DNA of 64,000 nt from Scyliorhinus canicula (Eukaryota), in NCBI RefSeq assembly GCF_902713615.1, contig NW_024055479.1:186001-250000 (forward strand), given 5' to 3'. How positions within the stretch are numbered: position 1 is the stretch's first letter; every line of letters begins with the position of its first letter. The position numbers and the translations under genes were made by a program. Below, piece by piece: positions 10,262 through 64,000 of this stretch. The notes beneath the pieces are model-generated. The model made no database searches and was not told where the DNA came from. It saw only the letters and a program-made list of their open reading frames with translations.

Positions 10262-11547
10262 TGTGGCGTCGTTGGTGAGTCAGGAGGTTGGATGAAGTGG
10301 TAAATCCCTTCCCACAATTGGAGCAGGTGAACGGTCACTCTCCAGTGTGAACTCGCCGGTGCCTCTGCAGGGTGGATAACTGAGTGAATCCCTTCCCACA
10401 CTTGGAGCAGGTGAATGGCCTCTCCCCAGTGTGAACTCGCTGGTGCCTCTGCAGTTCGGATGAATCAATGAATCCCTTCCCACACCAGGAGCAGGTGAAT
10501 GGCCTCTTCCCAGTGTGAATTCTCTGGTGTCTCCGCAGGGCTGATGACTGAGTGAATCCCTTCTCACACCAGGAGCAGGTGAATGGTTTCTCCCCAGTGT
10601 GAACTCGCTGGTGTTTCTCCAGGTCGGATGACCGAGTGAATCCCTTCCCACACTTGGAGCAGGTGAATGGCCTCCCCCCAGTGTGAATTCGCTGGTGCTT
10701 CTCCAGGTCAGATGACTGAGGGAATCCCATCCGACACCAAGAACAGGTGAATGGCCTCCCCCCAATGTGAATTCGCTGGTGTTTGCGCAGGGCCGATGAC
10801 TGAGTGAATCCCTTCCCACACTGAGAGCAGGTGAATGGCCTCTCCCCAGTGTGAATTCGCTGGTGGTTCCGCAGAGTGGATGACTGAGTGAATCCCTTCC
10901 CACACTGAGAGCAGATGAATGGCCTCTTCCCAGTGTGAATTAGCTGGTGTGACAGCAGGTTGGATGACTGAGTGAATCCCTTCCCACATTGGGAGCAGGT
11001 GAATGGCCTCTCCCCAGTGTGAATTTGCTGATGTACAGTGAGGTCAAAAGATCGTCTGAACCCAGTCCCACAGTGAGAGCACCGGAATGGTTTCTCGTCA
11101 GTGTGAACACGTTTATGGAGCAGCAGTTCCCCAGAACTTCTGTAGCACTTCCCGCAATATGGACATTGAAAAGATCTCTCAGCAGTGTGAATTCGCTGGT
11201 GTTTGCGTAGGGCGGATGGCTGAGTGAATCCCTTCCCACACTTGAAGCAGGTGAATGGTCTCTCCCCAACGTGAATTCGCTGGTGTTTGCGCAGGGCGGA
11301 TAACTGAGTGAATCCCTTCCCACACTTGAAGCAGGTGAATGGTCTCTCCCCAGTGTGACTGCGCCGATGAGTTTCCAGCCTGGATGGGTAAGTGAATCCT
11401 TTCCCACAGTCCGCACATTTCCACGGTTTCTCCTCAGTGTGACTGCATTTCGTGGCTTTTGAGCCCCGATGATCGAGTGAATCCTCGTCCACACACACAA
11501 CACGTGTACGGTTCCTCTCCACTGTGAATGATGCTTTTTCCGTCCAT
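10262..11547 (-). pseudogene. KRAB-less tandem C2H2 zinc-finger gene A: 13 fingers in the long ORF 10335-11522, about 15 in total; frameshift near 11451 and premature TGA at 10335-10337
   Basis: Repeated CxxC...HxxxH fingers with TGERPF linkers; start [23 protein letters not shown] (ATG at 11547) is out of frame with the main ORF by one extra base; one more finger follows the TGA, then a CR1 tail (about 10100-10262). Confidence 0.85.
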
Positions 11548-15524: not shown

Positions 15525-15705
15525 TAGCACACTGGGCTAAATCGCTGGCTTTTGAAGCAGACCAAGGCAGGCCAGCAGCATGGTTCAATTCCCATACCAG
15601 CCTCCCCGAACAGACGCCGGAATGTGGCGACTAGTGGCTTTTCACAGTAACTTCATTGAAGCCTACTCGTGACAATAAGCAACTTTCATTTTCATTTCAT
15701 TTCCT
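15525..15705 (+). mobile_element. Short tRNA-derived SINE (about 180 bp, ATTTC tail)
   Basis: GGTTTAGCACACTGGGCTAAATCGCTGGC...GGTTCAATTCCC.TACCAGCCTCCCCGAACAG...GACAATAAGC; further copies at 28650-28772, 40620-40775 and 40895-41065 (-). Confidence 0.75.
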
Positions 15706-20631: not shown

Positions 20632-21390
20632 ATGAGGAAACCATGGAAATGTGGAGATTGTGGGAAGGGATTCACTTTCCCATCTGAGCTGGAAACTCAT
20701 CGAAGTACTCACACTGGGGAGAGACCGTTCACCTTCTCTCATTGTGGGAAGGGATTTACTAATTCGTCTGACTTGTTGAGACATCATCGAGTTCACTCTG
20801 GGAAGAGCCCATTCACCTGCTCCATGTGTGGCAAAGGATTCAGAGATTCATCCAGCCTGCTAACACATCAGCGAGTTCATACCGGGGAGAAGCCATTTAC
20901 CTGCTCAGTGTGTGGGAAGGGATTTACTAATTCATCCAACCAGCTGAGACATTAGCGAGTTCACACTGGGGAGAGACCATCCACCTGCTCCGAATGTGGG
21001 AAAGGATTTAGAGATTCATCCTGCCTAATGGCACATCAGCAAATTCACACTGAGGTGAGACCATTCACCTGCTTACTGTGTGGGAAGGGATTCACTAATT
21101 CATCCAACCTGCTGATACACCAGAGAGTTCACACTGGGGAAAGACCATTCTCCTGCTCTGTCTGTGGGAAGGGATTTACTATTTTATCCAACCTGCTGAC
21201 ACACCAGCGAGTTCACACTGGGGAAAGACCATTCACCTGCTCCGTGTGTGGCAAGGGATTTACCAATTCATTTAACTTGCTGACACACCAGCGAGTTCAC
21301 ACTGATGAGAAGCCGTTTATCTGCTCCGTGTGTGGGATAGGATTCAGAAATGCATCCCATCTGCGGAGGCACCAGCGAGTTCACAAGTAA
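20632..21390 (+). pseudogene. KRAB-less C2H2 zinc-finger gene B, 9 fingers, single in-frame TAG at 20953-20955
   Basis: ORFs 20632-20955 and 21028-21390 are in the same frame; the finger text continues across the stop ([11 protein letters not shown]); ends HQRVHK-TAA. Confidence 0.85.
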
Positions 21391-22421: not shown

Positions 22422-25400
22422 GGAGACTTCCGGTGGCTGTGATGGAGTAGGAAGCCACACATTTGGGAGCTCCCGTTTTAAAGAGACTTTTCGGCTCATT
22501 TGAGAGCCCAAAACGGAAATTTCTCGACGTCTCCCGGTGGGGGAAGGTGTCCTGAACGACTTTCCCCGCAGTCCATGCCTCGAACTCGGAGTGGAAAGGG
22601 GGAGAAAACGGCAGCAGCTCCTCAGAAAAAACGGGGGAAGGAATCCAAGATGGCGGCCGGGGGAGCCCCAGAGGAGTGGAGGCTGTGGGCCCAGGAGCAA
22701 CAAACTGATCTCCTGCGCTGCTTTAAAGAATTCAAGGATGAGGTACTGAGCTCTCTGCAGGAAACGAACAGAAGGCTGTCAGAGATTCAGTCCACCCAGG
22801 GTGCTGCCATCAAGGAGTTGCAGACGCAGGCCACTGAACGAGAGGAGGAGGCCGTGGTCCTCGTTAGTAAGGTGCAGGGGCACGAGGCACTCCACAAGAA
22901 GTGGCAGGAACGCTTCGAGTAGTTGATCACCGCATGAGGCGGAAAAACCTGCGGATCCTGGGCCTTGCGGAGGGGCTGGAGGGGTCGGACCTGACAGCCT
23001 ACGTGGCTGTAATGCTGAACTCGCTAGTGGGGGCCGGGTCTTTCCATCTGCCCTTGGAGCTGGAGGGAGCACACAGAGTACTGGCCAGGAGGCCGAAGGA
23101 AGATGAAGCCCCGCGCGCGGTGCTGGTGAGATTCCACCGGTTCAGTGATCGGGAGTGTGTGCTGCGCTGGACCAAGAAGGTGAAGAGCAGCAAGTGGGAG
23201 AATGGGGTAGTACGGATCTACCAGGATTGGAGTGCGGAGGTGGCTAAGCGGCGGTCCGGATTTAATCGGACGAAAGAGGTGCTTTATAGAAAAAAGATAA
23301 AGTTCGGAATGTTGCAGCCTGCGCGCCTGTGGGTAACTTATTCGGACCAGCATTATTATTTCGATTCCCCGGAGGAGGCGTGGGCCTTCGTGCGGATGGA
23401 GGAACTGGACTTGAACTAGGGGTTGGGGGTTGCGGGATCGTCTGTAATATATGAGTGCTGGATTCTGCTGTTGCTGTGTTCTCTTTTTCTTCTGTTTTTC
23501 TCTTCTTGTTTTAGTACTTTTGCAATTTTGATATGGTTATTTATGGCGGTGTTGTTCTGCTATGTTTTTGTTTTTGTGCTGTGGGGCACTGTTTGGGCTG
23601 TGTATCTTGCGGGGAGGGTCGGGGGGGTCTGTTGTATTCTATGGCGGGTTGGGGGTATGGAGTGGGGCTGATATTTGGGAGCTGCATCAGAAGGGTGTGG
23701 TGGGGCAGTGCGAAAGCATGGGCTTTCCTCTGGTTTCCCGCGCTGCGGGGCTGGGGGGTGGAGACGGTGACGGGGGAGGCGGGGCCTTAACTGGTTCTTC
23801 CCGCGCTGGAGCGGTGCCTGGAGAAGGGATAGATTGGGGGATGATCCCACTTCGGGAGGGGTCGGGCTATTGGCGGGAGTTTCCGGGGTCAGCAGAAGTC
23901 AGCTGACCCACGGAAGAACAATGGAGGACGGTTCGCGGCTGGGAGGGTTCCTAGCCTGGGGGGGGAAGGGAGGGGGGAGGAAGGGGAATACCGGGTTGCT
24001 GCTGGTAGGGACAAGAAGGAGCTGGTGGGGGCTGGGGGGACAGAGGTGAGGTGTTGTCGCTGTGGGGACTGGGTCGGGCGGGCGGGTGCTGGCCTGGGGC
24101 GGGCAGTCGATGGGCTATGGCTAGTCGACGCGAGGGGGGGGGGGGCGGGACGCCCTCTGATCCGGTTGGTCACTTGGAATGCGAGAGGGTTGAATGGGCC
24201 GGTGAAGCGGTCGAGAGTACTGGCTCACCTGAAGGGGCTAAAGGCAGATGTGGCAATGCTTCAGGAGACCCACCTGAAGGTGGCGGATCAGGTCCATCTG
24301 AGGAAGGGATGGGTGGGGCAGGTTTTCCACTCTGGGTTGGATGTGAAAAACCAGGGAGTGGCGATTCTGGTGGGGAAAAATGTGTTGTTTGAGGCATCGG
24401 AGGTGGTGGCGGATAAGGGGAGTAGGTATGTTATGGTTAGGGGCAGGCTACAAGGAGAGACGGTGGTACTGGCTAGTGTGTATGCCCCAAATTGGGACGA
24501 TGCAGGCTTTATGAGGCGTATGTTGGGACGGATCCCGGATCTGGAGGCTGGAGGTCTGATCATAGGGGGGGACTTTAATACGGTGTTGGATCCTTCACTG
24601 GATTGGTCCAGCTCTAGGACGGGTAGGAGGCCGGCGGCGGCCAAGGTACTGAGAGGGTTTATGGATCAGATGGGTGGAGTGGATCCATGGAGGTTTGTGA
24701 GGCCGAGGGCACGCGAGTACTCTTTCTTATCCCACGTACATAGGGTCTACTCTCGGATAGATATCTTCGTGGTGAGTAGGGGACTGATTCCGAGAGTGGA
24801 GGAGGCCCAGTATTCGGCCATTGCAATCTCCGACCACGCTCTGCATTGGATAGAGTTGGAGATGGTGGAGGTGCGGGACCAACGTCCGCTTTGGCGGTTA
24901 GATGTGGGGTTGTTGGCGGAGGAGGAGGTGTGTAGGAGGGTCCGGGCAAGTATTGAGGGGTACCTCGAGGTGAATGATGCGGGGGAGGTTCAGGTGGGGA
25001 TGGTCTGGGAAGCCCTGAAGGCAGTAATTCGTGGGGAGCTGATATCCATCCGGGCACACAGGGAGAGGAGTGAGAGGGATGGACTGGTGGGAAAGATGCT
25101 GGAGGTGGACAGGAGGTATGCAGCGGCACCAGAGGAGGGACTGTTGGGGGAGAGGCGCAACCTGCAGACTAAATTTGATTTGCTGACCACTAGAAAGGCG
25201 GAGGCACAGTGGAGGAAGGCACAAGGGGCAGTGTACGAACATGGTGAAAAGGCAAGTAGGATGCTGGCTCATCAGCTCCGCAAGCAGGATGTGGCTAAGG
25301 AAATTGCTGGAGTGAGAGACAAGAGTGGGAATGTGGTGCGGAAGGGGGTAGAGGTCAATGAGGTCTTCAAGGACTTTTACGGGGAACTGTACCGGTCGGA

Positions 25401-25490
25401 GCCAACGGGGGATAGGAGGGGAATGGAGAGGTTCCTTGATGGGCTTTCTTTCCCAAAGGTGCAGGAGGAGAAGGTGGAGGGGTTGGGGCA
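22422..25490 (+). mobile_element. L1-clade element with 5' UTR, frameshifted ORF1 (22500-23419) and ORF2 endonuclease through early RT; 3' part missing
   Basis: ORF1 RMRRKNLRILGL...RFHRFSDRECVLRW; ORF2 LVTWNARGLN...QETHL...GGDFN...SDH; sequence switches abruptly to a SINE at about 25490. Confidence 0.9.
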
Positions 25491-25894
25491 ATTTAGTGTG
25501 GCCAATCCTCCTAACTTGTATCTTTGGATTGTGGGAGAAAACTGGAGCACCCGGAGGGACCCCACACAGACACAGGGAGATTGTGTGGCGTTTGCACAGT
25601 CACCCAAGGTCGAAATAGCTGAAACATCAGGACACTGCTCCTGGGAATTGATGGTATGGTGGTTCAGTAAATATAATAAGTGGATTAAAAGTGTGTGTAA
25701 TATTGAGTTAAAACTGAAAATGCCAGATTAATTCAACAGATTTGGCAGCATCACAGAATCCCTACAGTGCAGAAGGAGGCCATTTCCCCCATTGAGTTTG
25801 CAACAACTCTACAAAAGAGCACCCCACCCAGGTGCACTTTCCTTTCCCTCTGCCCGAAACCCCATATCACCTTTTGACAGTAAGGGGCAATTTA

Positions 25895-36689: not shown

Positions 36690-38124
36690 TGAATCCAAAC
36701 CCTGCTGTTGTCTGTGAACTTGCTGATGTCTGTGCAGGTTGTTTGACTGAGTGAATCTCCTCCCACGCACAGAGCAGTTAAACATCCTCTCCCCAGTACC
36801 GCTCCCATATGTAGGCCACACGGTAGCACAGTGGTTAGCACAGTTGCTTCAAAGCTCCAGGGTCCCAGAATTCCCGGTTTGGCTTACAGTCTGTGTGGAG
36901 TTTGCACGTTCTCCCATTGTCTGCGTGGGTTTCCTCCGGGTGCTGCAGTTTCCTCCCACAAGTCGAAAAATGTGCAGATTAGATGGATTGGCCATGCTAA
37001 ATTGCCCTGAGTATCCAAAAAGGTTAGGTGGGGTTATGGGTTAGGTTGGAGGTATGGGCTTAAGTAAGGTGCTCTTTGCAAGGGCCGGCGCACTCGATGG
37101 GCTGAATGCCCTCCTTCTGCACTGTAAATTCTATGATTCTGTTTCAGTGTAAACTCGCCGGTGTTTCAGCAGATGCTGTTCACTTTTAAAACTTTTTTCA
37201 GTCAGAACATTTGAAAGGTTTCTGATCAATGTGAACAAGTTGGTGTGTCATCAGGCGGGATGACTGAATAATTTTCTTGTCACACATGGGGCAAGAGTAA
37301 GGCCTCTGCCCAGTGTGAACTCGCTGGTGTTCCAGGAGGTGGGATGACCGAGTGAATCCCTTCCCACACACGGAGCAGGTGAACGGCCTCTCCCCAGTGT
37401 GAGTACGTTGATGTGTCAGTAAATCATTTCTGCGTTTAAAGCTTTTTTCACAGTCAGCACATTTAAAAGGTCTCTGATCAGTATGGACAAGTTGGTGTCT
37501 CAGGAGGTCTGATGACTGAGTGAAGTGAATCCCATCCCACACACGGAGCAGGTGAATGGCCTCTCCCCAGTGTGAGTGCGTTGGTGTCTCAGTAAATCCT
37601 GTTTACTTTTAAAACTCTTCTCACAATCAGCACATTTAAAAGGTCTCTGATCAGAATGAACAAGCTGGTGTCTCAGGAGGAATGATGACTGAGTGAATCC
37701 CTTCCCACACACGGAGCAGGTGAGTGGCTTCTCTCCAGTGTGTTGGCGTTGATGCGCCCATAAATCCTTTCTGCGTTTAAAGCTCTTTTCACAGTCAGCA
37801 CATTTAAACGGTCTCTGGTCGGAGTGAACCTGATGGTGATCCCGGAGGTTTGACGAAGCATTAAATCCCTTCCCACATTCCAAAGAGGTGAATGGCCTCT
37901 CCCCAGTGTGAGTGCATTGATGTAACAGTAAACTATTTCTGCTTTAAAAGCTTTTTCCACAGTCAGCACATTTAAACGGTCTCTGATCAGTATGAACAAG
38001 TTGGTGTATCAGGGGGTGGGATGACAGAGTGAATCCCTTCCCACACACGGAGCAGGTGAATGGCCTCTCCCCAGTGTGAATACGTTGATGTGTCAGCAAA
38101 TCCTTTCTGCGTTTAAAGCTCTTT
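36690..38124 (-). pseudogene. C2H2 zinc-finger gene C with alternating two-finger repeat; frameshifted, split by an HE1 SINE and cut at 38124 by CR1
   Basis: Alternating [25 protein letters not shown] and (T/S)[15 protein letters not shown]...DLL.HQRTH units in ORFs 37198-37542, 37500-37883 and neighbours. Confidence 0.85.
36814..37140 (+). mobile_element. HE1/V-SINE, full length, inserted antisense in ZNF gene C
   Basis: CACGGTAGCACAGTGGTTAGC head, V core, tail CTGCACTGTAAATTCTATGATTCT. Confidence 0.85.
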
Positions 38125-40410
38125 CGGATGGAGCGATCACAATATGGTGGAATTTAAAATACAGCTGGAGGGTGAGAAAGTAAAATCAAATACTAGTGTT
38201 TTGTGTTTAAACAAAGGAGATTACAAGGGGATGAGAGAAGAACTAGCTAAGGTAGACTGGGAGCTAAGACTTTATGGTGGAACAGTTGAGGAACAGTGGA
38301 GAACCTTCCAAGCAATTTTTCACAGTGCTCAGCAAAGGTTTATACCAACAAAAAGGAAGGACGGAAGAAAGAGGGAAAATCGACCGTGGATATCTAAGGA
38401 AATAAGGGAGAGTATCAAATTGAAGGAAAAAGCATATAAAGTGGCAAAGATTGCTGGGAGATTAGAGGACTGGGAAATCTTTAGGGGGCAACAGAAAGCT
38501 ACTAAAAATGCTATAAAGAAGAGTATGAGAGTAAACTTGCTCAGAATATAAAAACAGACAGTAAACGTTTTTACAAATGTATAAGACAAAAAAGAGTGGC
38601 TAAGGTAAATATTGGTCCTTTAGAGGATGAGAAGGGAGTTTCAATAATGGGAAATGAGGAAATGGCTGAGGAACTGAACAGGTTTTTTGGGTCGGTCTTC
38701 ACAGTGGAAGACACAAATAACATGCCAGCGACTGATAGAAATGAGGCTATGAAAGGTAAGGACCTTGAGAGGATTGTTATCACAAAGAAGGGAGTGATGG
38801 GCAAGCTAATGGGGCTAAAGGTAGACAAGTCTCCTGGCCCTGATGGAATGCATCCCAGAGTGCTAAAAGAGATGGCTAGGGAAATTGCAGATGCACTAGT
38901 GATAATGTACCTAAATTCACTAGACTCTGGGGTGGTCCCGGTGGATTGGAAATTAGCAAACGTAACGCCACTGTTTAAAAAAGGAGGTAGGCAGAAAGCA
39001 GGAAATTATAGACCAGTGAGCTTAACTTCGGTAGTAGGGAAGATGCTGGAATCTATCATCAAGGAAGAAATTGCGAGGCATCTGGATAGAAATTGTCCCA
39101 TTGGGCAGACGCAGCATGGGTTCATAAAGGGCAGGTCATGCCTAACTAATTAAGTGGAATTTTTTGAGGACATTACCAGTGCATTAGATAACGGGGAGCC
39201 GATGGATGTGGTATATCTGGCTTTCCAGAAAGCCTTTGACAAGGTGCCACACAAAAGGTTGCTGCATAAGATAAAGATGCATGGCATTACGGGTAAAGTA
39301 GTAGGATGGATAGAGGATTGGTTAATTAATAGAAAGCAAAGGGTGGGGATTAATGGGTGTTTCTCTGGTTGGCAATCAGTAGCTAGTTGTGTCCCTCAGG
39401 GATCCGTGTTGGGCCCACAATTGTTCACAATTTACATAGATGATTTGGAGTTGGGGACCAAGGGCAATGTGTCCAAGTTTGCAGATGACACTAAGATGAG
39501 TGGTAAAGCGAAAAGTGCAGAGGATACTGGAAGTCTGCAGAGGGATTTGGATAGGTTAAGTGAATGGGCTAGGGTCTGGCAGATGGAATACAATGTTGAC
39601 AAATGTGAGGTTATCCATTTTGGTAGGAATAACAGCAAACAGGATTATTATTTAAACGATAAAATATTAAAGCATGCCGCTGTTCAGAGAGACTTGGGTG
39701 TGCTAGTGCATGAGTCACAGAAGGTTGGTTTACAAGTGCAACAGGTGATTAAGAAGGCAAATGGAATTTTGTCCTTCATTGCTAGAGGGATGGTGTTTAA
39801 GACTAGGGAGTTTATGTTGCAATTGTATAAGGTGTTAGTGCGGCCACACCTGGAGTATTGTGTTCAGTTTTGGTCTCCTTACTTGAGAAAGGACGTACTG
39901 GCGCTGGAGGGTGTGCAGAGGATATTCACTAGGTTAATCCCAGAGCTGAAGGGGTTGGATTATGAGGAGAGGTTGAGTAGACTGGGACTGTACTCGTTGG
40001 AATTTAGAAGGATGAGGGGGGATCTTATAGAAACATTTAAAATTATGAAGGGAATAGCTAGGATAGATGCGGGCAGGTTGTTTCCACTGGCGGGTGACAG
40101 CAGAACTAGGGGACATAGCCTCAAAATAAGGGGAAGTAGATTTAGGACTGAGTTTAGGAGGGACTTCTTCAACCAAAGGGTTGTGAATCTATGGAATTCC
40201 TTGCCCAGTGAAGCAGTTGAGGCTCCTTCATTACATGTTTTTAAGGTAAAGATAGATAGTTTTTTGAAGAATAAAGGGATTAAGGGTTATGGTGTTCGGG
40301 CCGGAAAGTGGAGCTGAGTCCACAAAAGATCAGCCACGATCTAATTGAATGGCGGACCAGGCTAGAGGGGCCAGATGGCCTACTCCTGCTCCTAGTTCTT
40401 ATGTTCTTAT
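38125..40410 (+). mobile_element. CR1-clade LINE (HER1-like), 5'-truncated, largely intact ORF2 and 3' UTR
   Basis: ORFs 38596-39153 and 39154-40317 are contiguous in frame (one TAA); DKSPGPDG, NYRPVSLTSVVGK, QGSVLGP, FADD motifs; tail (TTCTTATG)n. Confidence 0.92.
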
Positions 40411-41059
40411 GTTCTTATGTAAAAAGGAGATTACATTGAAATACTGTGAATATATAAGACACAAACAGGCCATTCTGTCACAGATTCTGCTGCTGTCAAT
40501 ACTCGGCACACATCTCCGACTGTCACACCGATCAAATCTCAGCCTTTCAGCTGATTTCAATTCCAATTTCTCTCACGTCCTTGCCCCGTTTCCTTTTGAA
40601 AACATCTCAGCACTTTCCTCGCTGGCTTTGAAAGCAGACCAAGGCAAGCCAGCAACACAGTTCAATTCCCGTACCAGCCTCCCCGGACAGGCGCCGGAAT
40701 GTGGCGACTGGGGGCTTTTCACAGTAACTTCACTGAGACCTACTGGTGACAATAAGCGACTTTCATTTCATTTTCAACTCCTTTCCATGGTAATGAGTTG
40801 CACATTCTGAACCAGTCATAAATAATTTTGTCTGTATTGTTCCCTTGGATTTATTCATAACTATCTTGTATTTATGACTTGTTTATTGAAATGAAATGAA
40901 AATCTCTTATTGTCACACATGGGCTTCAAATGAAGTTACTGTGAAGAGCCCGTAGTTGCCACATTCTGGCGCCTGTTCGGGAAGGCTGGTACAGGAATTG
41001 AACCGTTCTGCTGGCCTACGTTGGTCATCTTTGAAAGCCAGCGATTTAGCCCAGTGTGC

Positions 41060-51367: not shown

Positions 51368-51376
51368 TATTTAAAT
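51368..51376 (+). promoter_or_regulatory. TATA-like box of the VH promoter
   Basis: TATTTAAAT about 80 nt upstream of the leader ATG, preceded by a GC-rich segment. Confidence 0.55.
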
Positions 51377-51454: not shown

Positions 51455-51512
51455 ATGACCAGAAGGATGAGGTGGGCCATTTCTCTCAGTTTGTTGCTGA
51501 CTTTCTTATCCC
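51455..51512 (+). CDS. IGHV: IgH V leader exon (MTRRMRWAISLSLLLTFLS; ATG at 51455 or in-frame 51467)
   Basis: Hydrophobic signal peptide, phase-1 donor C|GTGAGT at 51513, 128-nt intron ending TTTTTACAG at 51640. Confidence 0.9.
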
Positions 51513-51640
51513 GTGAGTAGTTTTTATTGTCCAAGTCTCTCACTGTTACTGTCTCAGTGTTAGTCTCTCTCTGGAATGTTCCAGAGTCACCAATCATTTC
51601 ACCAGCATTAATCCTCGGGCTTTTTGATATATTTTTACAG

Positions 51641-51943
51641 GTGTCCAGTCGCAGGTTGTGTTGACTCAGCCAGAGGCAGAGACCGGGCGTCCCGGAGGCT
51701 CCCTGACACTGATCTGTAAAACCAGCGGGTTCAGCCTTGGCAGCTACTGGATGAGCTGGGTCCGCCAGGTACCCGGACAGGGGCTGGAGTGGCTCGTTAG
51801 CTACCGTACTTCATCCTACAACGGCTACGCCCCAGCCATTAAAGATCGATTTACTGCGTCCAAAGACACTTCGAACAACATCTTTTCTTTGGCCATGAGG
51901 AGTCTGAAGACTGAAGACACCGCCATCTATTACTGTGCAAGAG
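51641..51943 (+). CDS. IGHV: IgM-type heavy-chain variable segment exon, open and intact
   Basis: (R)[100 protein letters not shown]; conserved Cys (51715), WVRQ, YYC (TGT 51934); typical shark VH-mu framework. Confidence 0.95.
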
Positions 51944-51957
51944 GTACAGCAGTGGAT
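51943..51957 (+). CDS. D1-like segment fused directly to V (GGTACAGCAGTGGAT, reads GTAVD)
   Basis: 15 nt between YYCAR and the first heptamer; resembles shark D1 sequences as recalled; followed by a 22-bp-spacer RSS. Confidence 0.75.
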
Positions 51958-51995
51958 CACAGTGCTGTGCACAGCGACATCCTCATACAAAAACG
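51958..51995 (+). other. RSS, 22-bp spacer (23-class)
   Basis: CACAGTG (51958-51964), 22 nt, ACAAAAACG (51987-51995). Confidence 0.92.
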
Positions 51996-52305: not shown

Positions 52306-52373
52306 AGTATTTGACACGTTGTGTCTCACTGTGATAGCTGGGTAGCACAGCAGTTACTGTCAATACAAAAACC
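52306..52373 (+). other. D2 segment ATAGCTGGGTAG (52334-52345) flanked by two 12-RSS
   Basis: 5': AGTATTTGA-12 nt-CACTGTG (52306-52333); 3': CACAGCA-12 nt-ACAAAAACC (52346-52373). Confidence 0.9.
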
Positions 52374-52673: not shown

Positions 52674-52712
52674 GGTTATTGTATGGAGCTGCCCAGGGAA
52701 TGTGACACTGTG
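52674..52712 (+). other. 23-RSS of JH
   Basis: GGTTATTGT (52674-52682), 23 nt, CACTGTG (52706-52712). Confidence 0.92.
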
Positions 52713-52760
52713 ACGCCATGGGCTACTGGGGACAAGGCACCATGGTGACGGCGAATGCAG
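52713..52760 (+). CDS. IGHJ: JH segment (AMGYWGQGTMVTANA)
   Basis: WGQG motif; splice donor GTAAG at 52761. Confidence 0.93.
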
Positions 52761-52859
52761 GTAAGAACTGTTCCATTATTTATGAACTGCTTTACTTTTG
52801 TCTTTGTTTTACTTATTTTTTTCTATTTTAAGTATGCATTCGTTCACTGAATTGTGGGT

Positions 52860-54290
52860 TTGCTGTATTGAGATTTTGTTGCAATGTTTCATGTGATTCT
52901 GCTGAAATAGGAATTACTCTGCCTCTTGATAAAATATGCTGCTGAGGGATTCAGTCCCTGGTTGTTATGATTTGATGTTTATTTGCTGAGGACTGTGTGG
53001 CTGGATACTTTAAATACCTGACGCCTGTTAAACAGTTTGGTATTTCGTAATGTTTAATCTCGGCGACATCTGAGCAGGTTTTACCATCTGCTACACAAGT
53101 GTTAGAAATCTAACCCAATATTAACAAAAGTGCTGATGTATCTGTGTCAATTTATTGAACACTTCCCGCTTATTGACAATGCTGATGATATTCTTCCATA
53201 TTTCTGTGTGTTTTAATTGTTCATTCACTTGCTGAAAGGCGGATTTGGTGGGTTCTAGATTGAGATTTTCTTGAAACGCTGTTTGATTCTGTTGAAAGTG
53301 TTTGTAGATTTTAGATGGTTCTCCGTGAGACAAATTTCAGCCCCTCGCTGATGAAATTTGGTGTATTTCTGCTGAAGATATTGAGTCTGGGTGATTTTGA
53401 ATATGTGAAGTTTGTGAAACGGTTCTGGCATTTCTATGTTCTTTAAACTCGTTGATATTGAGCGGTTCCATGTTTTGTAATTGAATGAAAACAACACACG
53501 TGTTTGAAACGGCTGCATGATTGTAGGCAGAAAACAGTCAGGGTTTTAGAGTGTTTTTAAAAGTGATGATTGCAGATTAAACCACAGTTTAAAATGCTCT
53601 TTCCGAACATAATTTGTTACTGCAATCACAGCCTGGTTTTTCTGCAACGTTCCATCTTGGTGGGATTGATGGATGCAGCTTTATCTCTCCTGGCAATTGT
53701 TTAAATGCGTTTGAAATATGGTCCAACATGAATAACATGTGGTAAAGTTTCAAAAATATTTTGGACATACTCCACATCCTCACAATGATATTGCTGTTAT
53801 TCTGTATTTCTATTTAGATTGATAATTCGTACATTTGTTGGCGAACTGGTTTGCTGGATTCGATATTCAGATGTTTTTGAAATGTTACGTTTGATTCTGT
53901 TGAATGTAGAATTTAGCTGTTTCTCAATGAAACGGGTTGAGTCCTTACGATGAGTTTTGACGTGTTCCTGCTGAGGAGATAGTTTGTCTGAGTGACTTTG
54001 AATAAGTACGATTTGTGAAGCGGTTTCCTGTTTCTCCCTTGTTTCTGCATTGTTCAAACTGGGTGATATTGAGCAGTTACACGTTTTCTGGTTACATGTA
54101 AAAAGGTTTGCGCGTTTGAATCTCCTTGAAACACAATTGTAGGGAGTAAACGCAGCAGGTTTCAAAAATAAGGAAAGGAATTAAAGAATTGGTAGACTTT
54201 TAAAATTTTATCTAATGCTTACTGATTAAACTAAACCACGGCGTCATTAAGAACGCAATTTGTTACTGCAGTCTGAAACTATTTAATTAA
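52860..54290 (+). repeat. Degenerate triplicated unit at the start of the J-C intron
   Basis: TGATTCTG(C/T)TGAA near 52893, 53284 and 53892; TGCTGA(G/A)GA near 52984, 53370 and 53969; copies 2 and 3 share about 600 bp including AATTTGTTACTGCA. Confidence 0.6.
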
Positions 54291-54374
54291 AACATTTTCA
54301 AATTAGTGAGCAAACTTAATATAACTTAAACAATTATAATGCAGTGTTATAACCATATTATCCAAATATGTTTT

Positions 54375-55410
54375 CATGTACATACACTCTCTCATGCATA
54401 TGCTCTCTCTCACACACTCTCTCTAACACGCATGGTCTCTCGCATGCACGCTCTCTCACGCTCTCACACACACGCTCTCCCACACAGACACACACACACG
54501 GCCTCTCGCACACACATGCGCTCTTGTAATCCTGCTCTGTCACACCTGTAACGTCTCTTGCACACATGCTCTCTCACACACATGCTCTCACACACATGCT
54601 CTCTCACACACAAGCTCTCTCACACACTTGCTCTCTCACATACATGCTCTCTCATACACTCACTCTCTCACACTCATGCTCTCACCAACACACGCTCTCT
54701 CACACACAAACTCTCTCACACACGAACTCTCATTCTTGATTGCACACATGCTCTAACACACATGCTCTCGTACTCATGTTTTCTCGCACACATGCTCTAT
54801 CATACTCATGCTCTCTCGCACACATGCTCTCTCACAAACATGTTCTTTTGCACACATGCTCTCCCATGCACACGTTCTCTCACACTTGCACTCTCACACA
54901 TATGCTCCCTTGCACACATGCTCTCACACATATGTTGTGTCGCACACACTCTCACACACATGTTCTCTCGCACACATGCTCTCTCACATACATGCTGTCT
55001 TACTCACATGCTTTGGTGCATCCATGCTCTCTCACACACATGGTCTCTTGTGAAGGCACTCTTTCACACACATGCTCTCTCACACACAATTTTGCTCATA
55101 CTCTCTATCTCTCTCCTGTGCACACTATTTTGCTCCCTCACACACGCATCCTTTCTCTCGCACAGATACACACAATCGCGCTCTCACACACAGATATTCT
55201 CTCCCAGACAGATACTCTCTCTCACACACACACTCACACGTATACTCTTTCTCCCACTCTCTTGACCCATGTCTCGCAGAAACACACACACACATTAACA
55301 CGCATACATGCAGTCACATACATAGACACAGACCCACGCTCTCAGACACATACCCACACTCTCCCTCACATACACTCAAAAACACACGCACTTTCAGATA
55401 CACAGGTGAG
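54375..55410. repeat. CA/CT-rich low-complexity minisatellite (CACACATGCTCTCT-like)
   Basis: Repeated CACACATGCTCTCT units and (CA)n/(CT)n runs. Confidence 0.85.
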
Positions 55411-55429
55411 AGCGACTGAATTTGACATC

Positions 55430-55740
55430 AATAATAACAATATTAATCTTTATTGTCACAAGTAGGCTTACATTAGCACTGAAATGAAGTTACTGTGAAA
55501 ATCCTCCAGTCGCCACACTCTGGTTCGGCTACACAGAGGGAGAGTTCAGAATATCCAAACCCCCTAACAGGTCGTTTTTCGGGACTTGTGAGAGGAAACC
55601 GGAACGCCCGGAAAAAACATAAGCAGACTCCGGGGAGAACGTGCAGACTGCACACAGGCAATGAGCCAAGCTGGGAATCGAACCCGGGTCCCTGGTGCTG
55701 TGAAGCAACAGGGTTAACCACTGTGCTGTCGTGCCGCCAA
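55430..55740 (-). mobile_element. V-SINE variant
   Basis: Reverse complement of head GGCGGCACGACAGCACAGTGG, V core and GACAATAAAGATT tail. Confidence 0.75.
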
Positions 55741-56219
55741 ATCAAGGCAGCATTTCAACGTGTGACCTCAAGCAGTCCAACCAAAGAATGGAACCATGGG
55801 AACCAGGGGAACAATCTCCAAGGTAGATGGATTCCATTGCTGGAGATCAATTATCTCAGTTCCAGGACATCACTGCAAGACTTCTTCAGGGCAATATCCT
55901 AGGTCCAACCATCTTCAGCTTATTCATCAATGACCTTCTTTCCATCATGAGGTCTGAACTGGGGTTGTTGCACCATGCTCAGCACAGTTTGCAACTGTGC
56001 AGTCTCTAAATAAATCTATGTGTAAATAAAGCAACATGGCGGCCATATCAGGTTCTGGCTAACAGGTGGTAAGTAACAGTCAAGTCACCCAATTGACGGC
56101 AATGCCCACCTCCAGTAAGAACGGATCTAACCACCGCCCCTCAATGGCATTACCATCATTGAATCCCCACTAACAACCTCCTGGGGATTAACAATGACCA
56201 GAAAGTGATCTGGATCCGC

Positions 56220-59200
56220 ATTCCCTCTGTTCCCTCAGTCATCCACACTCACTCTCCTACCCTCACTCAGTTACTCACTCCCCCGCACTCACTCTCCTAC
56301 CCTCACTCAGTACCTCAGTCATCCACACTCACTCTCCTACCCTCAGTCAGTTACTCACTCCCCCGCACTCACCCTCCTCACTCACTCAGTACCTCAGTCA
56401 TCCACACTCACTCTCCTACCCTCAGTCAGTTACTCACTCACCTGCACTCACTCTCCTACCCTCACTCAGTTACTCACTCATCCACAATCACACTCCTATC
56501 TTTACTCAGTTGCTCACTCACCCACACTCACTCTCCTACCCTCACTCAGTTAATCACTCACCTGCACTCACTTGCCTACCCTCACTCAGTTACTCACTCA
56601 CCCACGCTCACTCTCCGAACCTTACACAGGTACTCACTCACACGCGCTCACTCTCCTTCACTCACTCAGCTACTCACCCACACTAACTGTCCTACCCTCA
56701 CTCAGTTACTCACTCACCCACACCCACTCTCCTACCCTCACTCAGTTACTCACTCACCCGCACTCACTCTCCAACCCTCACTCAGGTACTCACTCACACA
56801 CACTCACTCTCCTACCCTCACTCAGTTACTCACTCACCCGCACCCACTCTCCTACCCTCACTCAGTTACTCACTCACTGCACCCGCTCTCCGACCCTCAC
56901 TCAGCTACACACTCACCCGCACTCACTCTCCTACCCTCACTCAGTTACTCACCCGCACTCTCTCTACTACTCTCTCTCAGTCAATCACTCACCTGCACTC
57001 ACTCTCCTACCCTCACTCAGTTACTCACTCACCCACACTCACTCTCCTACCCACACTCAGTTACTCACTCACCCTCCTATCCTCACTCAGGAACTCACTC
57101 ATCCACACATACACTCCTCCACTCACTCAGTTACTTACTCATCCACAATCACTCGTCTACCCTCACTCAATTACTCACTCACGCACACTCACACTCGTGC
57201 CCTCACTCAGTTACTCACTCACCCGCACTCAGTCTCCTACACTCACTCAGTTACTCACTCACCCACACTCACACCCCTACCCTCACTCAGGTACTCACTC
57301 ACCTGCACTCACTCTCCTTCCCTCACTTTCTCACACGCACTCACTCTCCTTCCCACACTCAGTGACTCACTCACCCACACCCACTTTACTGCACTCACTT
57401 AGTTACTCACTCACTCGCACTCACCCTCCTACCCTCACTCAGTTACTCACTTGCACAAACTCACTCTCCTACCTTCACTCACTTACTCACTCATCCACAC
57501 TCACACTCCTCCCTTCACTCAGTTGTTCACTCACCAGCACTCACTCTCCTACCCTCACTCACTCATGTGCATCCACTCTGCTACCCTCACTCAGTTACTC
57601 ATTCACCCACACTCAATGTCCAGACCCTCACTTAGTTGCTCCCTCACCAGCACTCACTCTCCTACCCTCAGTCAGTTACTCACTCACCCGCACTCACTTT
57701 CCTACCGTCACTCAGTTACCCACTCACCCACACTCAATCTCCTACCCTCACTCAGTTACTCACCCACACTCACTCTCCTTCACTCACTCAGTTATTCCAT
57801 CACCCGCTCTCACTCTCCCACCCTCACTCAATTACCCACTCACCCGCATTCCCTCTGTTACACTCACTCAGTTAGTCACTCACCCGCACTCACTCTCCTA
57901 CCCTCACTCAGTTACCCACTCACCCGCATTCACTCTCTCACCCTCACTCAGTTAGTCACTCACCCGCACCCACTCTCCTACCCTCACTTAGTTACTCACT
58001 CACTGCACCCGCTCTCCGACCCTCACTCAGCTACACACTCACCCGCACTCACTCTCCTACCCTCACTCAGTTACTCACCCGCACTCTCTCTACTACCCTC
58101 CCTCAGTCAATCACTCACCTACCGTCTCTCAGTCAATCACTCACCCACACTCACTCTCCTACCCTCACTCAGTTACTCACTCACCCTCCTATCCTCACTC
58201 AGGAACTCACTCATCCACACATACACTCCTCCACTCACTCAGTTACTTACTCATCCACAATCACTCGTCTACCCTCACTCAATTACTCACTCACGCACAC
58301 TCACACTCGTGCCCTCACTCAGTTACTCACTCACCCGCACTCAGTCTCCTACACTCACTCAGTTACTCACTCACCCACACTCACACCCCTACCCTCACTC
58401 AGGTACTCACTCACCTGCACTCACTCTCCTTCCCTCACTTTCTCACACGCACTCACTCTCCTTCCCACACTCAGTGACTCACTCACCCACACCCACTTTA
58501 CTGCACTCACTTAGTTACTCACTCACTCGCACTCACCCTCCTACCCTCACTCAGTTACTCACTTGCACAAACTCACTCTCCTACCTTCACTCACTTACTC
58601 ACTCATCCACACTCACACTGCTCCCTTCACTCAGTTGTTCACTCACCAGCACTCACTCTCCTACCCTCACTCACTCATGTGCATCCACTCTGCTACCCTC
58701 ACTCAGTTACTCATTCACCCACACTCAATGTCCAGACCCTCACTTAGTTGCTCCCTCACCAGCACTCACTCTCCTACCCTCAGTCAGTTACTCACTCACC
58801 CGCACTCACTCTCCTACCCTCACTCAGTTACCCACTCACCCACACTCAATCTCCTACCCTCACTCAGTTACTCACCCACACTCACTCTCCTTCACTCACT
58901 CAGTTATTCCATCACCCGCTCTCACTCTCCCACCCTCACTCAATTACCCACTCACCCGCATTCCCTCTGTTACCCTCACTCAGTTAGTCACTCACCCGCA
59001 CTCACTCTCCTACCCTCACTCAGTTACCCACTCACCGGCATTCACTCTCTCACCCTCACTCAGTTAGTCACTCACCCCGCACCCACTCTCCTACCCTCAC
59101 TTAGTTACTCACTCACTGCACCCGCTCTCCGACCCTCACTCAGCTACACACTCACCCGCACTCACTCTCCTACCCTCACTCAGTTACTCACCCGCACTCT

Positions 59201-60713
59201 CTCTACTACTCTCTCTCAGTCAATCACTCACCTGCACTCACTCTCCTACCCTCACTCAGTTACTCACTCACCCACACTCACTCTCCTACCCACACTCAGT
59301 TACTCACTCACCCTCCTATCCTCACTCAGGAACTCACTCATCCACACATACACTCCTCCACTCACTCAGTTACTTACTCATCCACAATCACTCGTCTACC
59401 CTCACTCAATTACTCACTCACGCACACTCACACTCGTACCCTCACTCAGTTACTCACTCACCCGCACTCACTCTCCTACACTCACTCAGTTACTCACTCA
59501 CCCACACTCACCCCCCTACCCTCACTCAGGTACTCACTCACCTGCACTCACTCTCCTGCCCTCACTTTCTCACACGCACTCACTCTCCTTCACTCACTCA
59601 GTGACTCACTCACCCACACCCACTTTACTGCACTCACTTAGTTACTCACTCACTCGCACTCACCCTCCTACCCTCACTCAGTTACTCACTCGCACAAACT
59701 CACTCTCCTACCTTCACTCACTTACTCACTCATCCACACTCACACTCCTCCCTTCACTCAGTTGTTCACTCACCAGCACTCACTCTCCTACCCTCACTCA
59801 CTCATGTGCATCCACTCTGCTACCCTCACTCAGTTACTCATTCACCCACACTCAATGTCCAGACCCTCACTTAGTTGCTCCCTCACCAGCACTCACTCTC
59901 CTACCCTCAGTCAGTTACTCACTCACCCGCACTCACTTTCCTACCGTCACTCAGTTACTCTCTCACCCACACTCAATCTCCTACCCTCACTCAGTTACTC
60001 ACCCACACTCACTCTCCGTCACTCACTCAGTTATTCCATCACCCGCTCTCACTCTCCCACCCTCACTCAATTACCCACTCACCCGAATTCCCTCTGTTAC
60101 ACTCACTCAGTTAGTCACTCACCCGCACTCACTCTCCTACCCTCACTCAGTTACCCACTCACCGGCATTCACTCTCTCACCCTCACTCAGTTAGTCACTC
60201 ACCCGCACTCACTCTCCTACCCTCACTCAGTTACTTACCCACACTCACTCTCCTGCTCTCACTCATTTATTCCATCACCCGCACTCACTCTCCTACTCTC
60301 AATCAGCTCCCACTCGCCCTCACTCACTCTCCTACCCTCACTCAGTTACTCACTCACCCGCACTCACTCTACAACCTTCACTCATTTATTGACTCACCCA
60401 AACTTACTCTCCTACCCTCACTCAGTTACTCACTCACCCACATCACTCTCCTACCCTCACTCAGTTACTCACTCACCCGCACTCACTCTACTACCCTCAC
60501 TCAGTTACTCACTCACCGGCACTCATCTCCTACCCTCACTCATTTATTCACTCCCCCAAACTTACTCTCCTACCCTCACTCAGCTACCCACTCACCCACA
60601 CTCAATCTCCTACACGCATTCAGTTACTCACTCACTCTCCTACCCTCACTCAGTTAGTCCCTCACTCGCTCTTAATCTCCTACCCTCACTCAGTTACTCA
60701 CTCACCCGCACTC
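56220..60713 (+). repeat. 40-bp minisatellite array, C-rich on + strand, with about 1.1-kb higher-order repeats
   Basis: Consensus CACTCACTCTCCTACCCTCACTCAGTTACTCACTCACCCG; marker GTTGTTC at 57522, 58634 and 59761. Confidence 0.95.
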
Positions 60714-60813
60714 NNNNNNNNNNNNNNNNNNNNNNNNNNNNNNNNNNNNNNNNNNNNNNNNNNNNNNNNNNNNNNNNNNNNNNNNNNNNNNNNNNNNNNN
60801 NNNNNNNNNNNNN
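60714..60813. other. Assembly gap (100 N)
   Basis: Run of exactly 100 N. Confidence 0.99.
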
Positions 60814-63800
60814 GAGTGGGTAACTGAGTGACGGTAGGAAAGTGAGTGCGGGTGAGTGAGTAACTGACTGAGGGTAGGAGAGTGAGTGCTGGTGAGGGAG
60901 CAACTAAGTGAGGGTCTGGACATTGAGAGTGGGTGAATGAGTAACTGAGTGAGGGTAGCAGAGTGGATGCACATGAGTGAGTGAGGGTAGGAGAGTGAGT
61001 GCTGGTGAGTGAACAACTGAGTGAAGGGAGGAGTGTGAGTGTGGATGAGTGAGTAAGTGAGTGAAGGTAGGAGAGGGAGTTTGTGCGAGTGAGTAACTGA
61101 GTGAGGGTAGGAGGGTGAGTGCGAGTGAGTGAGTAACTAAGTGAGTGCAGTAAAGTGGGTGTGGTCACTGAGTGTGGGAAGGAGAGTGAGTGCGTGTGAG
61201 AAAGTGAGGGCAGGAGAGTGAGTGCAGGTGAGTGAGTACCTCAGTGAGGGTAGGGGAGTGAGTGCGGGTGAGTGTGTAACTGAGTGAGTGTAGGAGACTG
61301 AGTACGGGTGAGTGAGTAACTGAGTGAGGGCACGAGTGTGAGTGTGCGTGAGTGAGTAATTGAGTGAGGGTAGATGAGTGATTGTGGATGAGTAAGTAAC
61401 TGAGTGAGTGGAGGAGTGTATGTGTGGATGAGTGAGTTCCTGAGTGAGGATAGGAGGGTGAGTGTGGGTGAGTGAGTAACTGAGTGAGGGTAGGAGAGTG
61501 AGTGTGGGTGAGTGATTGACTGATAGAGAGTAGTAGAGAGAGTGCGGGTGAGTGAGTAACTGAGTGAGGGTAGGAGAGTGATTGCAGGTGAGTGATTGAG
61601 TGAGAGTAGGAGAGTGAGTGTGGGTGAGTGAGTAACTGAGTGAGGGTAGGAGGATGAGTGCAGGTGAGTGAGTAACTGACTGAGGGTAGCAGAGTGGGTG
61701 CACATGAGTGAGTGAGGGAAGGAGAGTGAGTGCTGGTGAGTGAACAACTGAGTGAAGGGAGGAGTGTGAGTGTGGATGAGTGAGTAAGTGAGTGAAGGTA
61801 GGAGAGTGAGTTTGTGCGAGTGAGTAACTGAGTGAGGGTAGGAGGGTGAGTGCGAGTGAGTGAGTAACTAAGTGAGTGCAGTAAAGTGGGTGTAGGTGAG
61901 TGAGTCACTAAGTGAGGGCAGGAGAGTGAGTGCAGGTGAGTGAGTACCTGAGTGAGGGTAGGGGAGTGAGTGTGGGTGAGTGAGTAACTGAGTGAGCGTA
62001 GGAGACTGAGTACGCGTGAGTGAGTAGCTGAGTGAGGGTACGAGTGTGAGTGTGCGTGAGTGAGTAATTGAGTGAGGGTAGACGAGTGATTGTGGATGAG
62101 TAACTGAGTGAGTGGAGGAGTGTATGTGTGGATGAGTGAGTTCCTGAGTGAGGATAGGAGGGTGAGTGTGGGTGAGAGAGTAACTGAGTGAGGGTAGGAG
62201 AGTGAGTGCTGGTGAGTGATTGACTGAGTGAGGGTAGTAGAGTAAGTGCGGGTAAGAGAGTAACTGAGTGAGGGTAGGAGAGTGAGTGTGGGTGAGTGAT
62301 TGACTGAGAGAGGGTAGTAGAGAGAGTGCGGGTGGGTGAGTAACTGAGTGAGGGGAGGAGAGTGATTGCAGGTGAGTGATTGAGTGAGGGTAGGAGAGTG
62401 AGTGTGGGTGAGTGAGTAACTGAGTGAGGGAAGGAGGATGAGTGCAGGTGAGTGAGTAAGTGAGTGAGGGTAGGAGACTGAGTGCGGGTAAGTGAGTAAG
62501 TGAGTGAGGGTAGGAGAGTGAGTGTGGGTGATTGAGTAACTGAGTGAGGGTAGGAGAGTGAGTGTGGGTGATTGAGTAACTGGGTGAGGGTAGGAGAGTG
62601 AGTGCGGGTGAGTGAGTAACTGAGTGAGGGTTGGAGAGTGAGTGCGGGGGAATGAGTAATTGAGTGAGAGTAGTAGAGTGAGTGTGGGTGAATGAATAAC
62701 TGAGTGAGGGTAGGAGAGTGAGTGTGTGCCAGTGAGTAACTGAGTTAAGGTAGCAGAGTACGAGCGGGTGAGTGATTAGCTGAGTGAGTGTAGGAGAGTG
62801 AGTGAGTAACTGAGTGAGGGTAGGAGAGAGAGTGCGGGTGTGGGAATAACTGAGTGAGTGTAGGAGAGTGGGAGCGGGTGAGTGAGTAAGTGAATGAGGG
62901 TAGGAGATTGAGTGTGGGTGAGTGAGTAACTGAGTCAGGGTCGGAGATTGATTGCGGGTAAGTGGGTAGCTGAGTGAGGGTCGGAGAGCGGGTGCAGTGA
63001 GTGAGTAACTGAGTGAGGGTAGCAGATTGAGTGCGAGTGAGTGAGTAACTAAGTGAGGGTAGGTGAGTGGGTGTGGGTGAGTGAGTAACTGAGTGAGGGT
63101 AGGAGAGTGAGTGCAGGTGAGTGAGTAACTGAGTGAGGGTAGGAGAGTGAGTGTGGGTGAGTGAGTAACTGAGTGAGGGTAGGCAAGTGAGTGCAGGTGA
63201 GTGATTAACTGAGTGATGGTAGGAGAGTGAGTGCGGGTGAGTGATTAACTGAGTGAGTGTAACAGAGGGAATGCGGGTGAGTGGGTAATTGAGTGAGGGT
63301 AGGAGAGTGAGTGCTGGTGAGTGAACAACTGAGTGAAGGGAGGAGTGTGAGTGTGGATGAGTGAGTAAGTGAGTGAAGGTAGGAGAATGAGTTTGTGCGA
63401 GTGAGTAACAGAGTGAGGGTAGGAGGGTGAGTGCGAGTGAGTGAGTAACTAAGTGAGTGCAGTAAAGTGGGTGTAGGTGAGTGAGTCACTGAGTGAGGGA
63501 AGGAGAGTGAGTGCGTGTGAGAAAGTGAGGGCAGGAGAGTGAGTGCAGGTGAGTGAGTACCTGAGTGAGGGTAGGGGAGTGAGTGTGGGTGAGTGAGTAA
63601 CTGAGTGAGCGTAGGAGACTGAGTACGGGTGAGTGAGTAACTGAGTGAGGGTACGAGTGTGAGTGTGCGTGAGTGAGTAATTGAGTGAGGGTAGACGAGT
63701 GATTGTGGATGAGTAACTGAGTGAGTGGAGGAGTGTATGTGTGGATGAGTGAGTTCCTGAGTGAGGATAGGAGGGTGAGTGTGGGTGAGTGAGTAACTGA

Positions 63801-64000
63801 GTGAGGGTAGAAGAGTGAGTGCAGGTGAGTGATTGACTGAGTGAGGGTAGTAAAGTAAGTGCGGGTAAGAGAGTAACTGAGTGAGGGTAGGAGAGTGAGT
63901 GTGGGTGAGTGATTGACTGAGAGAGGGTAGTAGAGAGAGTGCGGGTGAGTGAGTAACTGAGTGAGGGTAGGAGAGTGATTGCAGGTGAGTGATTGACTGA
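60814..64000 (-). repeat. Same 40-bp minisatellite array in the opposite orientation (G-rich on + strand), running to the window end
   Basis: GAGTGAGTAACTGAGTGAGGGTAGGAGAGTGAGTG units; the same higher-order marker (GAACAAC) at 61011, 61742 and 63323. Confidence 0.95.

Follow-up and report, generated by a model that had tools for sequence, protein, structure and literature searches.

A putative IgM-type heavy-chain minicluster of Scyliorhinus canicula with V fused to D1, very probably by germ-line joining

The contig of Scyliorhinus canicula analysed here carries what appears to be a shark IgM-type heavy-chain minicluster in which V is fused to D1 and in which D2 and J are still separate segments. 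This VD1-D2-J arrangement very probably arose by a RAG-type join of V to D1 in the germ line. The cluster is situated in the last quarter of the window (the whole stretch of 64,000 nucleotides that was analysed). Its V-D1 part (51641-51995) has exactly the layout put forward in the original prediction, every detail of which was found in place.

Anatomy of the cluster and its surroundings

The V exon starts at 51641, directly 3' of an AG acceptor, and encodes a V-set domain (Pfam E = 2.4e-16). In protein searches its best matches are the Ig heavy-chain V region HV01 of Heterodontus francisci (82% identity) and a V of Scyliorhinus torazame (82%). Identities to V genes of the bamboo shark Chiloscyllium punctatum reach up to 80%, and one C. 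punctatum V with 80% identity has a neighbouring gene model with C1-set domains. The cluster consists of the following elements:

51368-51376 (+): TATA-like box TATTTAAAT, 87 bp 5' of the ATG, in a promoter block shared with bamboo-shark IgM clusters
51455-51512 (+): leader exon, MTRRMRWAISLSLLLTFLS..., followed by a GTGAGT donor
51513-51640 (+): leader intron, GT...AG
51641-51943 (+): VH exon proper, with the end of the leader and FR1 to YYCAR; open, V-set, 3' end TGTGCAAGAG
51944-51957 (+): D1 coding sequence of 14 nt, GTACAGCAGTGGAT, fused in frame to V; its homologue is the free D1 ATACTACAGTGGGT of the C. punctatum cluster L001
51958-51995 (+): D1 3' RSS, with heptamer CACAGTG (51958-51964), 22-bp spacer (51965-51986) and nonamer ACAAAAACG (51987-51995)
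52306-52333 (+): D2 5' RSS, with nonamer AGTATTTGA, 12-bp spacer and heptamer CACTGTG
52334-52345 (+): D2, ATAGCTGGGTAG, with TAG in two of the three frames
52346-52373 (+): D2 3' RSS, with heptamer CACAGCA, 12-bp spacer and nonamer ACAAAAACC
52674-52712 (+): J RSS, with nonamer GGTTATTGT, 23-bp spacer and heptamer CACTGTG
52713-52760 (+): JH, AMGYWGQGTMVTANA, with 3' part YWGQGTMVTANA, followed by a GTAAGA splice donor

At the 3' end of V there is no heptamer; TGTGCAAGAG runs straight into GTACAGCAGTGGAT. The missing heptamer, the lack of intervening DNA and the RSS with a 22-bp spacer behind D1 had all been claimed beforehand, and all are seen in the sequence. The V-D1 frame is open, in keeping with the in-frame junction that had been proposed, and the spliced product of leader and V-D1, which begins MTRRMRWAISLSLLLTFLSRVQS, is open as well. 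D1 and D2 are 376 bp apart and D2 and J 367 bp, in line with the separation of roughly 350-380 bp that had been given for D2 and J. Such distances of less than about 400 bp, together with the shared orientation of D2 (12/12 RSS) and J (23-RSS), are as expected of an IgM-type minicluster.

The remaining signals are well preserved. Heptamers are perfect at D1 3', D2 5' and J, and the nonamers score 9/9 at D2 3', 8/9 at both D1 3' and J, and 6/9 at D2 5'. The window of 64 kb contains the heptamer-22-nonamer pattern a single time, as against no occurrence in 100 dinucleotide shuffles. The bamboo-shark clusters share the promoter, leader and splice sites in conserved form (promoter and leader in alignment A2), and the gene is unbroken as far as the J splice donor.

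Elsewhere in the window, an RSS-like sequence of the form CACAGTA-22-ACAATAAGC at 15643, 28703 and 40720 (+) was considered as an Ig element and rejected, as the three sites lie in copies of the dispersed repeat family D10; the motif merely resembles a cryptic RSS. One D10 copy (40619-40782) lies just 3' of a reverse-transcriptase ORF (39154-40317). The DNA upstream of the Ig cluster also contains C2H2 zinc-finger arrays with an 84-bp period at 10335-11522 (-), 20632-21390 (+) and 37198-37883 (-). ORFs for LINE endonuclease and reverse transcriptase are scattered among these arrays, for instance at 24025-25731 and at the above-mentioned 39154-40317.

Attachment of the cluster to a constant region, and its expression, are putative. 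Regarding C-mu exons, the ORF listing contains no Ig C-domain ORF in 52761-64000, the approximately 11 kb that follow J and that are interrupted by a 100-N gap; the J-C intron of the bamboo-shark cluster is longer than 7 kb. A tblastn search of the window with ORF pieces of L001, which contained no C exon, matched dispersed repeats only. Much of the DNA 3' of J is taken up by tandem arrays. A 16-bp array with the consensus CACACATGCTCTCTCA (54561-55088, about 33 copies) lies between J and a 40-bp array, which is C-rich on the plus strand and comprises about 114 copies (56234-60713). Past the 100-N gap (60714-60813), the same 40-bp family continues in inverted orientation with about 81 copies (60814-64000). 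A mirror-image assembly artefact was considered for this inverted repeat and rejected: the two arms share 84% identity in their best alignment and are thus a diverged paralogous array, not an exact palindrome. The inverted array suggests a diverged sibling cluster in tail-to-tail position or, alternatively, an inversion.

Comparison with an unjoined bamboo-shark cluster

The protein search matches led to a cluster of C. punctatum (L001; BEZZ01001580.1) with the layout V-D1-D2-J, in which V and D1 are unjoined. It served as the reference, so that the comparison of the V-D1 region spans two shark orders and one unjoined cluster. The V of L001 ends in TGTGCAAGAGAC and is followed by the heptamer CACAGTG, a 23-bp spacer and the nonamer TCAAAAACA. 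About 420 bp past this V RSS, a heptamer CATTGTG is located directly 5' of the free D1 ATACTACAGTGGGT. The 3' RSS of this D1 consists of CACAGTG, a 22-bp spacer and ACAAAAACC, and the D2 5' RSS, the J RSS and J are found downstream. The reference has imperfections of its own: the D1 5' nonamer is weak, and about 170 bp are missing at the 3' side of D2 relative to the window. The missing DNA (at L001:9280-9340) corresponds to the 3' part of D2, the D2 3' RSS and DNA downstream of it. Given this loss, the L001 cluster may be unable to complete rearrangement.

In alignment A1, the window and L001 are collinear through V. The window then shows a single gap, 430 columns long, behind which collinearity resumes at D1 and lasts until J ends, a region that takes in D1, the D1 3' RSS, the D1-D2 intersegment, the D2 5' RSS, the J RSS and J. 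The gap opens 2 nt 5' of the V heptamer and extends through the final base of the D1 5' heptamer. Four consecutive pieces of L001 are thus absent from the window: the 2 nt at the V end, the 23-RSS behind V, the intersegment between V and D1, and the 5' RSS of D1. This matches the original prediction, according to which the V RSS, the V-D1 spacer and the D1 5' RSS had been lost, and on sequence grounds the missing DNA is exactly what a V-to-D1 coding joint would remove.

The RSS that remains in the window is identical to the D1 3' RSS of L001 at 35 of 38 positions (20/22 within the spacer), as against 16 of 38 for the V RSS of L001 (spacer 5-8/22). Background similarity does not account for this match, because the adjoining D1-D2 intersegment is only 56% identical between the two clusters. 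As the 14 nt behind V align with the free D1 and the RSS following them agrees so closely with its 3' RSS, the former are D1 itself and the latter is the 3' RSS of D1. Two neighbouring segments are therefore fused, with both of their RSSs and the intersegment precisely lost relative to an unjoined homologue, and the RSS left downstream is that of the distal side of the joined segment.

Origin of the V-D1 join

The ancestral layout of the cluster would have been V(23-RSS)-(12)D1(22)-(12)D2(12)-(23)J. In a germ-line cell, V would then have been fused to D1 by the RAG recombinase or by RAG-like cutting and joining, and a single piece of DNA would have been removed, made up of the V RSS, an intersegment of about 420 bp and the D1 5' RSS. 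The event would have spared the V coding end, from which at most 1-2 nt would be lost as judged against bamboo-shark V ends (...AGAGAC), as well as essentially all 14 nt of D1, with the reading frame kept. RAG is the probable agent because each breakpoint lies where coding sequence and heptamer meet, in a 23-RSS/12-RSS pair; such a placement is the signature of a V(D)J coding joint. D1 starts with ATAC in the bamboo shark and with GTAC in the window; in this comparison across species, the junctional G may be a case of microhomology or a P nucleotide, or just the first base of the host D1. The absence of N nucleotides put forward in the original prediction is likewise putative.

A deletion unrelated to RAG, caused by replication slippage or end joining, might also have taken out the V-D1 interval. 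Nothing specific speaks for it, except that neither a signal joint nor a re-inserted excised V-D1 fragment, either of which would prove RAG action, was found in the 64-kb window. However, the two ends of the deletion lie at most 2 nt away from the points where heptamer and coding sequence meet in a pair of 23-RSS and 12-RSS, a placement that would be very unlikely for a random deletion of 430 bp. The reading frame is kept as well. We therefore regard this explanation as the least credible of the alternatives. Hardly better is the chance that this V family had V and D1 fused from the outset, as a native or archaic condition, i.e., a long V with a 22-spacer RSS and a single D that was never split. 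A second C. punctatum V (in L005, see below) is also located directly 5' of a D1-type RSS with a 22-bp spacer, so such V genes recur. Still, this V retains no D1 nucleotides, which is expected of independent joins with different trimming and not of one native long V. Moreover, the two-D split layout is the general form of IgM clusters in cartilaginous fishes according to reviews (PMC5192425), and the 14 nt and their RSS are homologous to a free D1 of L001 that has its own 5' heptamer and RSS. The original prediction had named a native long V with a single D as the alternative capable of overturning it, and it is on this free D1 that the alternative fails.

The third competing view concerns the time of the event and is, by a little, the most plausible of the three, yet still very improbable: the sequence could be a somatic, non-inherited VD-D-J intermediate (1R) that entered the assembly from a lymphocyte clone. 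B cells and thymocytes of the nurse shark do indeed commonly contain VD-D-J as a somatic intermediate (PMC2435157). Any one somatic join is rare and confined to its clone, however, so that an assembled consensus spanning at least 60 kb would be expected to show the majority germ-line form; partly joined clusters are, furthermore, present in several independent shark assemblies. Germ-line status is thus favoured in our analysis, which draws on the assembly consensus sequence and on these joined clusters.

If V and D1 were joined in the germ line as proposed, a lymphocyte would complete the assembly of the gene with two joins that obey the 12/23 rule, one between VD1 and D2 and one between D2 and J. 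The rule would bar VD1 from joining J directly, because both of their RSSs are of the long-spacer type. Junctional diversity would arise at two joints instead of three, and the start of CDR3 would be hard-wired as ARGTAVD and vary only by 3' trimming. Among the 13 closest homologues that were inspected at the sequence level, none has the ARGTAVD junction. A further and distinctly tentative proposal is that the V-D1 join is old and has been kept. If the candidate sibling in tail-to-tail position shares the junction, VD1 might have been duplicated after joining and then preserved, with RSSs still competent for recombination, as a semi-invariant antibody gene whose CDR3 base is fixed.

Joined antibody genes in sharks and other vertebrates

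In cartilaginous fish, IgH clusters can be joined in the germ line partly (VD-J, VD-DJ) or fully (VDJ), which has been attributed to RAG activity in germ cells (PMC5192425, PMC4279169, PMC2193156). Partly joined shark antibody genes have been known since 1988, when VD-J and VDJ genes were described in the horn shark (Kokubu et al. 1988, as cited in PMC4279169, PMC2193156). The unusual "intermediate state" between diversified and fixed antibody genes that the original prediction saw in this cluster is therefore overstated, since partial germ-line joins are textbook knowledge for these fishes (PMC5192425, PMC4279169, PMC2193156). The reviews name VD-J, VD-DJ and VDJ, and VD-D-J is not named explicitly in them (PMC5192425, PMC4279169, PMC2193156, PMC8355894). 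In lymphocytes of the nurse shark, the Group 2 genes frequently yield VD-D-J as their first rearrangement product (PMC2435157). Because it is so frequent as a first somatic step there, a germ-line copy of this step is unsurprising.

Judging from their sequences, public shark assemblies contain a graded series of germ-line joins. In C. punctatum L005 (BEZZ01138472.1, 917-988), the V end is fused directly to a D1-type RSS with a 22-bp spacer and to the D1 3' flank. Three further C. punctatum clusters are of the VDD-J type, in which the fused part is followed by a D2-type RSS with a 12-bp spacer (L002:3445-3530, L003:4670-4750, L004:3448-3530). The whale shark Rhincodon typus has a VDJ gene (L006:10465-10560). 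Among the five bamboo-shark V genes sampled, only that of L001 is unjoined. A V of S. torazame (P0002) also looks like VDD-J: its read-through past YYCTR, back-translated by hand from the protein, appears to lead to the D2 3' RSS.

A close counterpart of the S. canicula cluster is L005. In both, the V coding end directly precedes a D1 3' RSS of the same spacer family (22 bp) and the D1 3' flank. L005 retains no D1 nucleotides, however, whereas all 14 are present in the window, and its contig, at 988 nt, is too short to show the D2 and J context. The joined IgM clusters of Heterodontus francisci likewise are cluster-type IgH genes, and their V belongs to the same family as that of the window (82% identity to HV01). 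As far as the reviews cited above describe them, they have lost the RSSs between fused segments, with the remaining segments still flanked by RSSs, and they are inherited DNA. They are of the VD-J and VDJ types, whereas the window has only the first of the three joins. The somatic 1R VD-D-J products of nurse shark Group 2 genes show the identical configuration and the same 12/23 logic, with V-to-D1 as a favoured first step (PMC2435157). These, in contrast, are clonal lymphocyte products with diverse junctions (PMC2435157), and the window is an assembly consensus.

The fully joined VDJ genes, among them nurse shark IgM1gj and whale shark L006, belong to the same gene family and are germ-line joining products, too. 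No RSS is left in them and no somatic recombination is needed, whereas the gene in the window requires two joins. Outside the cartilaginous fish, the pseudo-VH (VD) donors of chicken and the partly germ-line-joined VH of opossum also are V-D fusions in inherited DNA, as far as they are cited in PMC2193156 and PMC8355894. According to the same reviews, these differ in being parts of translocon loci, and the chicken copies have no RSSs and act as donors in gene conversion.

The VD1-D2-J cluster of S. canicula is one more case of the known partly pre-joined shark antibody genes and leaves the accepted picture unchanged. The single-join VD-D-J is a configuration within this known phenomenon, with L005 as its counterpart in a public bamboo-shark assembly. 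As a clean single-join cluster with all remaining RSSs intact, it documents the first step of germ-line joining, and its precise VD1 junction can be used for dating, for population tests and for repertoire tests. Genes joined in the germ line tend toward expression early in life (PMC5192425, PMC4279169, PMC8355894, PMC2193156). In cartilaginous fish, such genes show RAG editing of the inherited genome, and they are candidates for innate-like, early-life antibodies.
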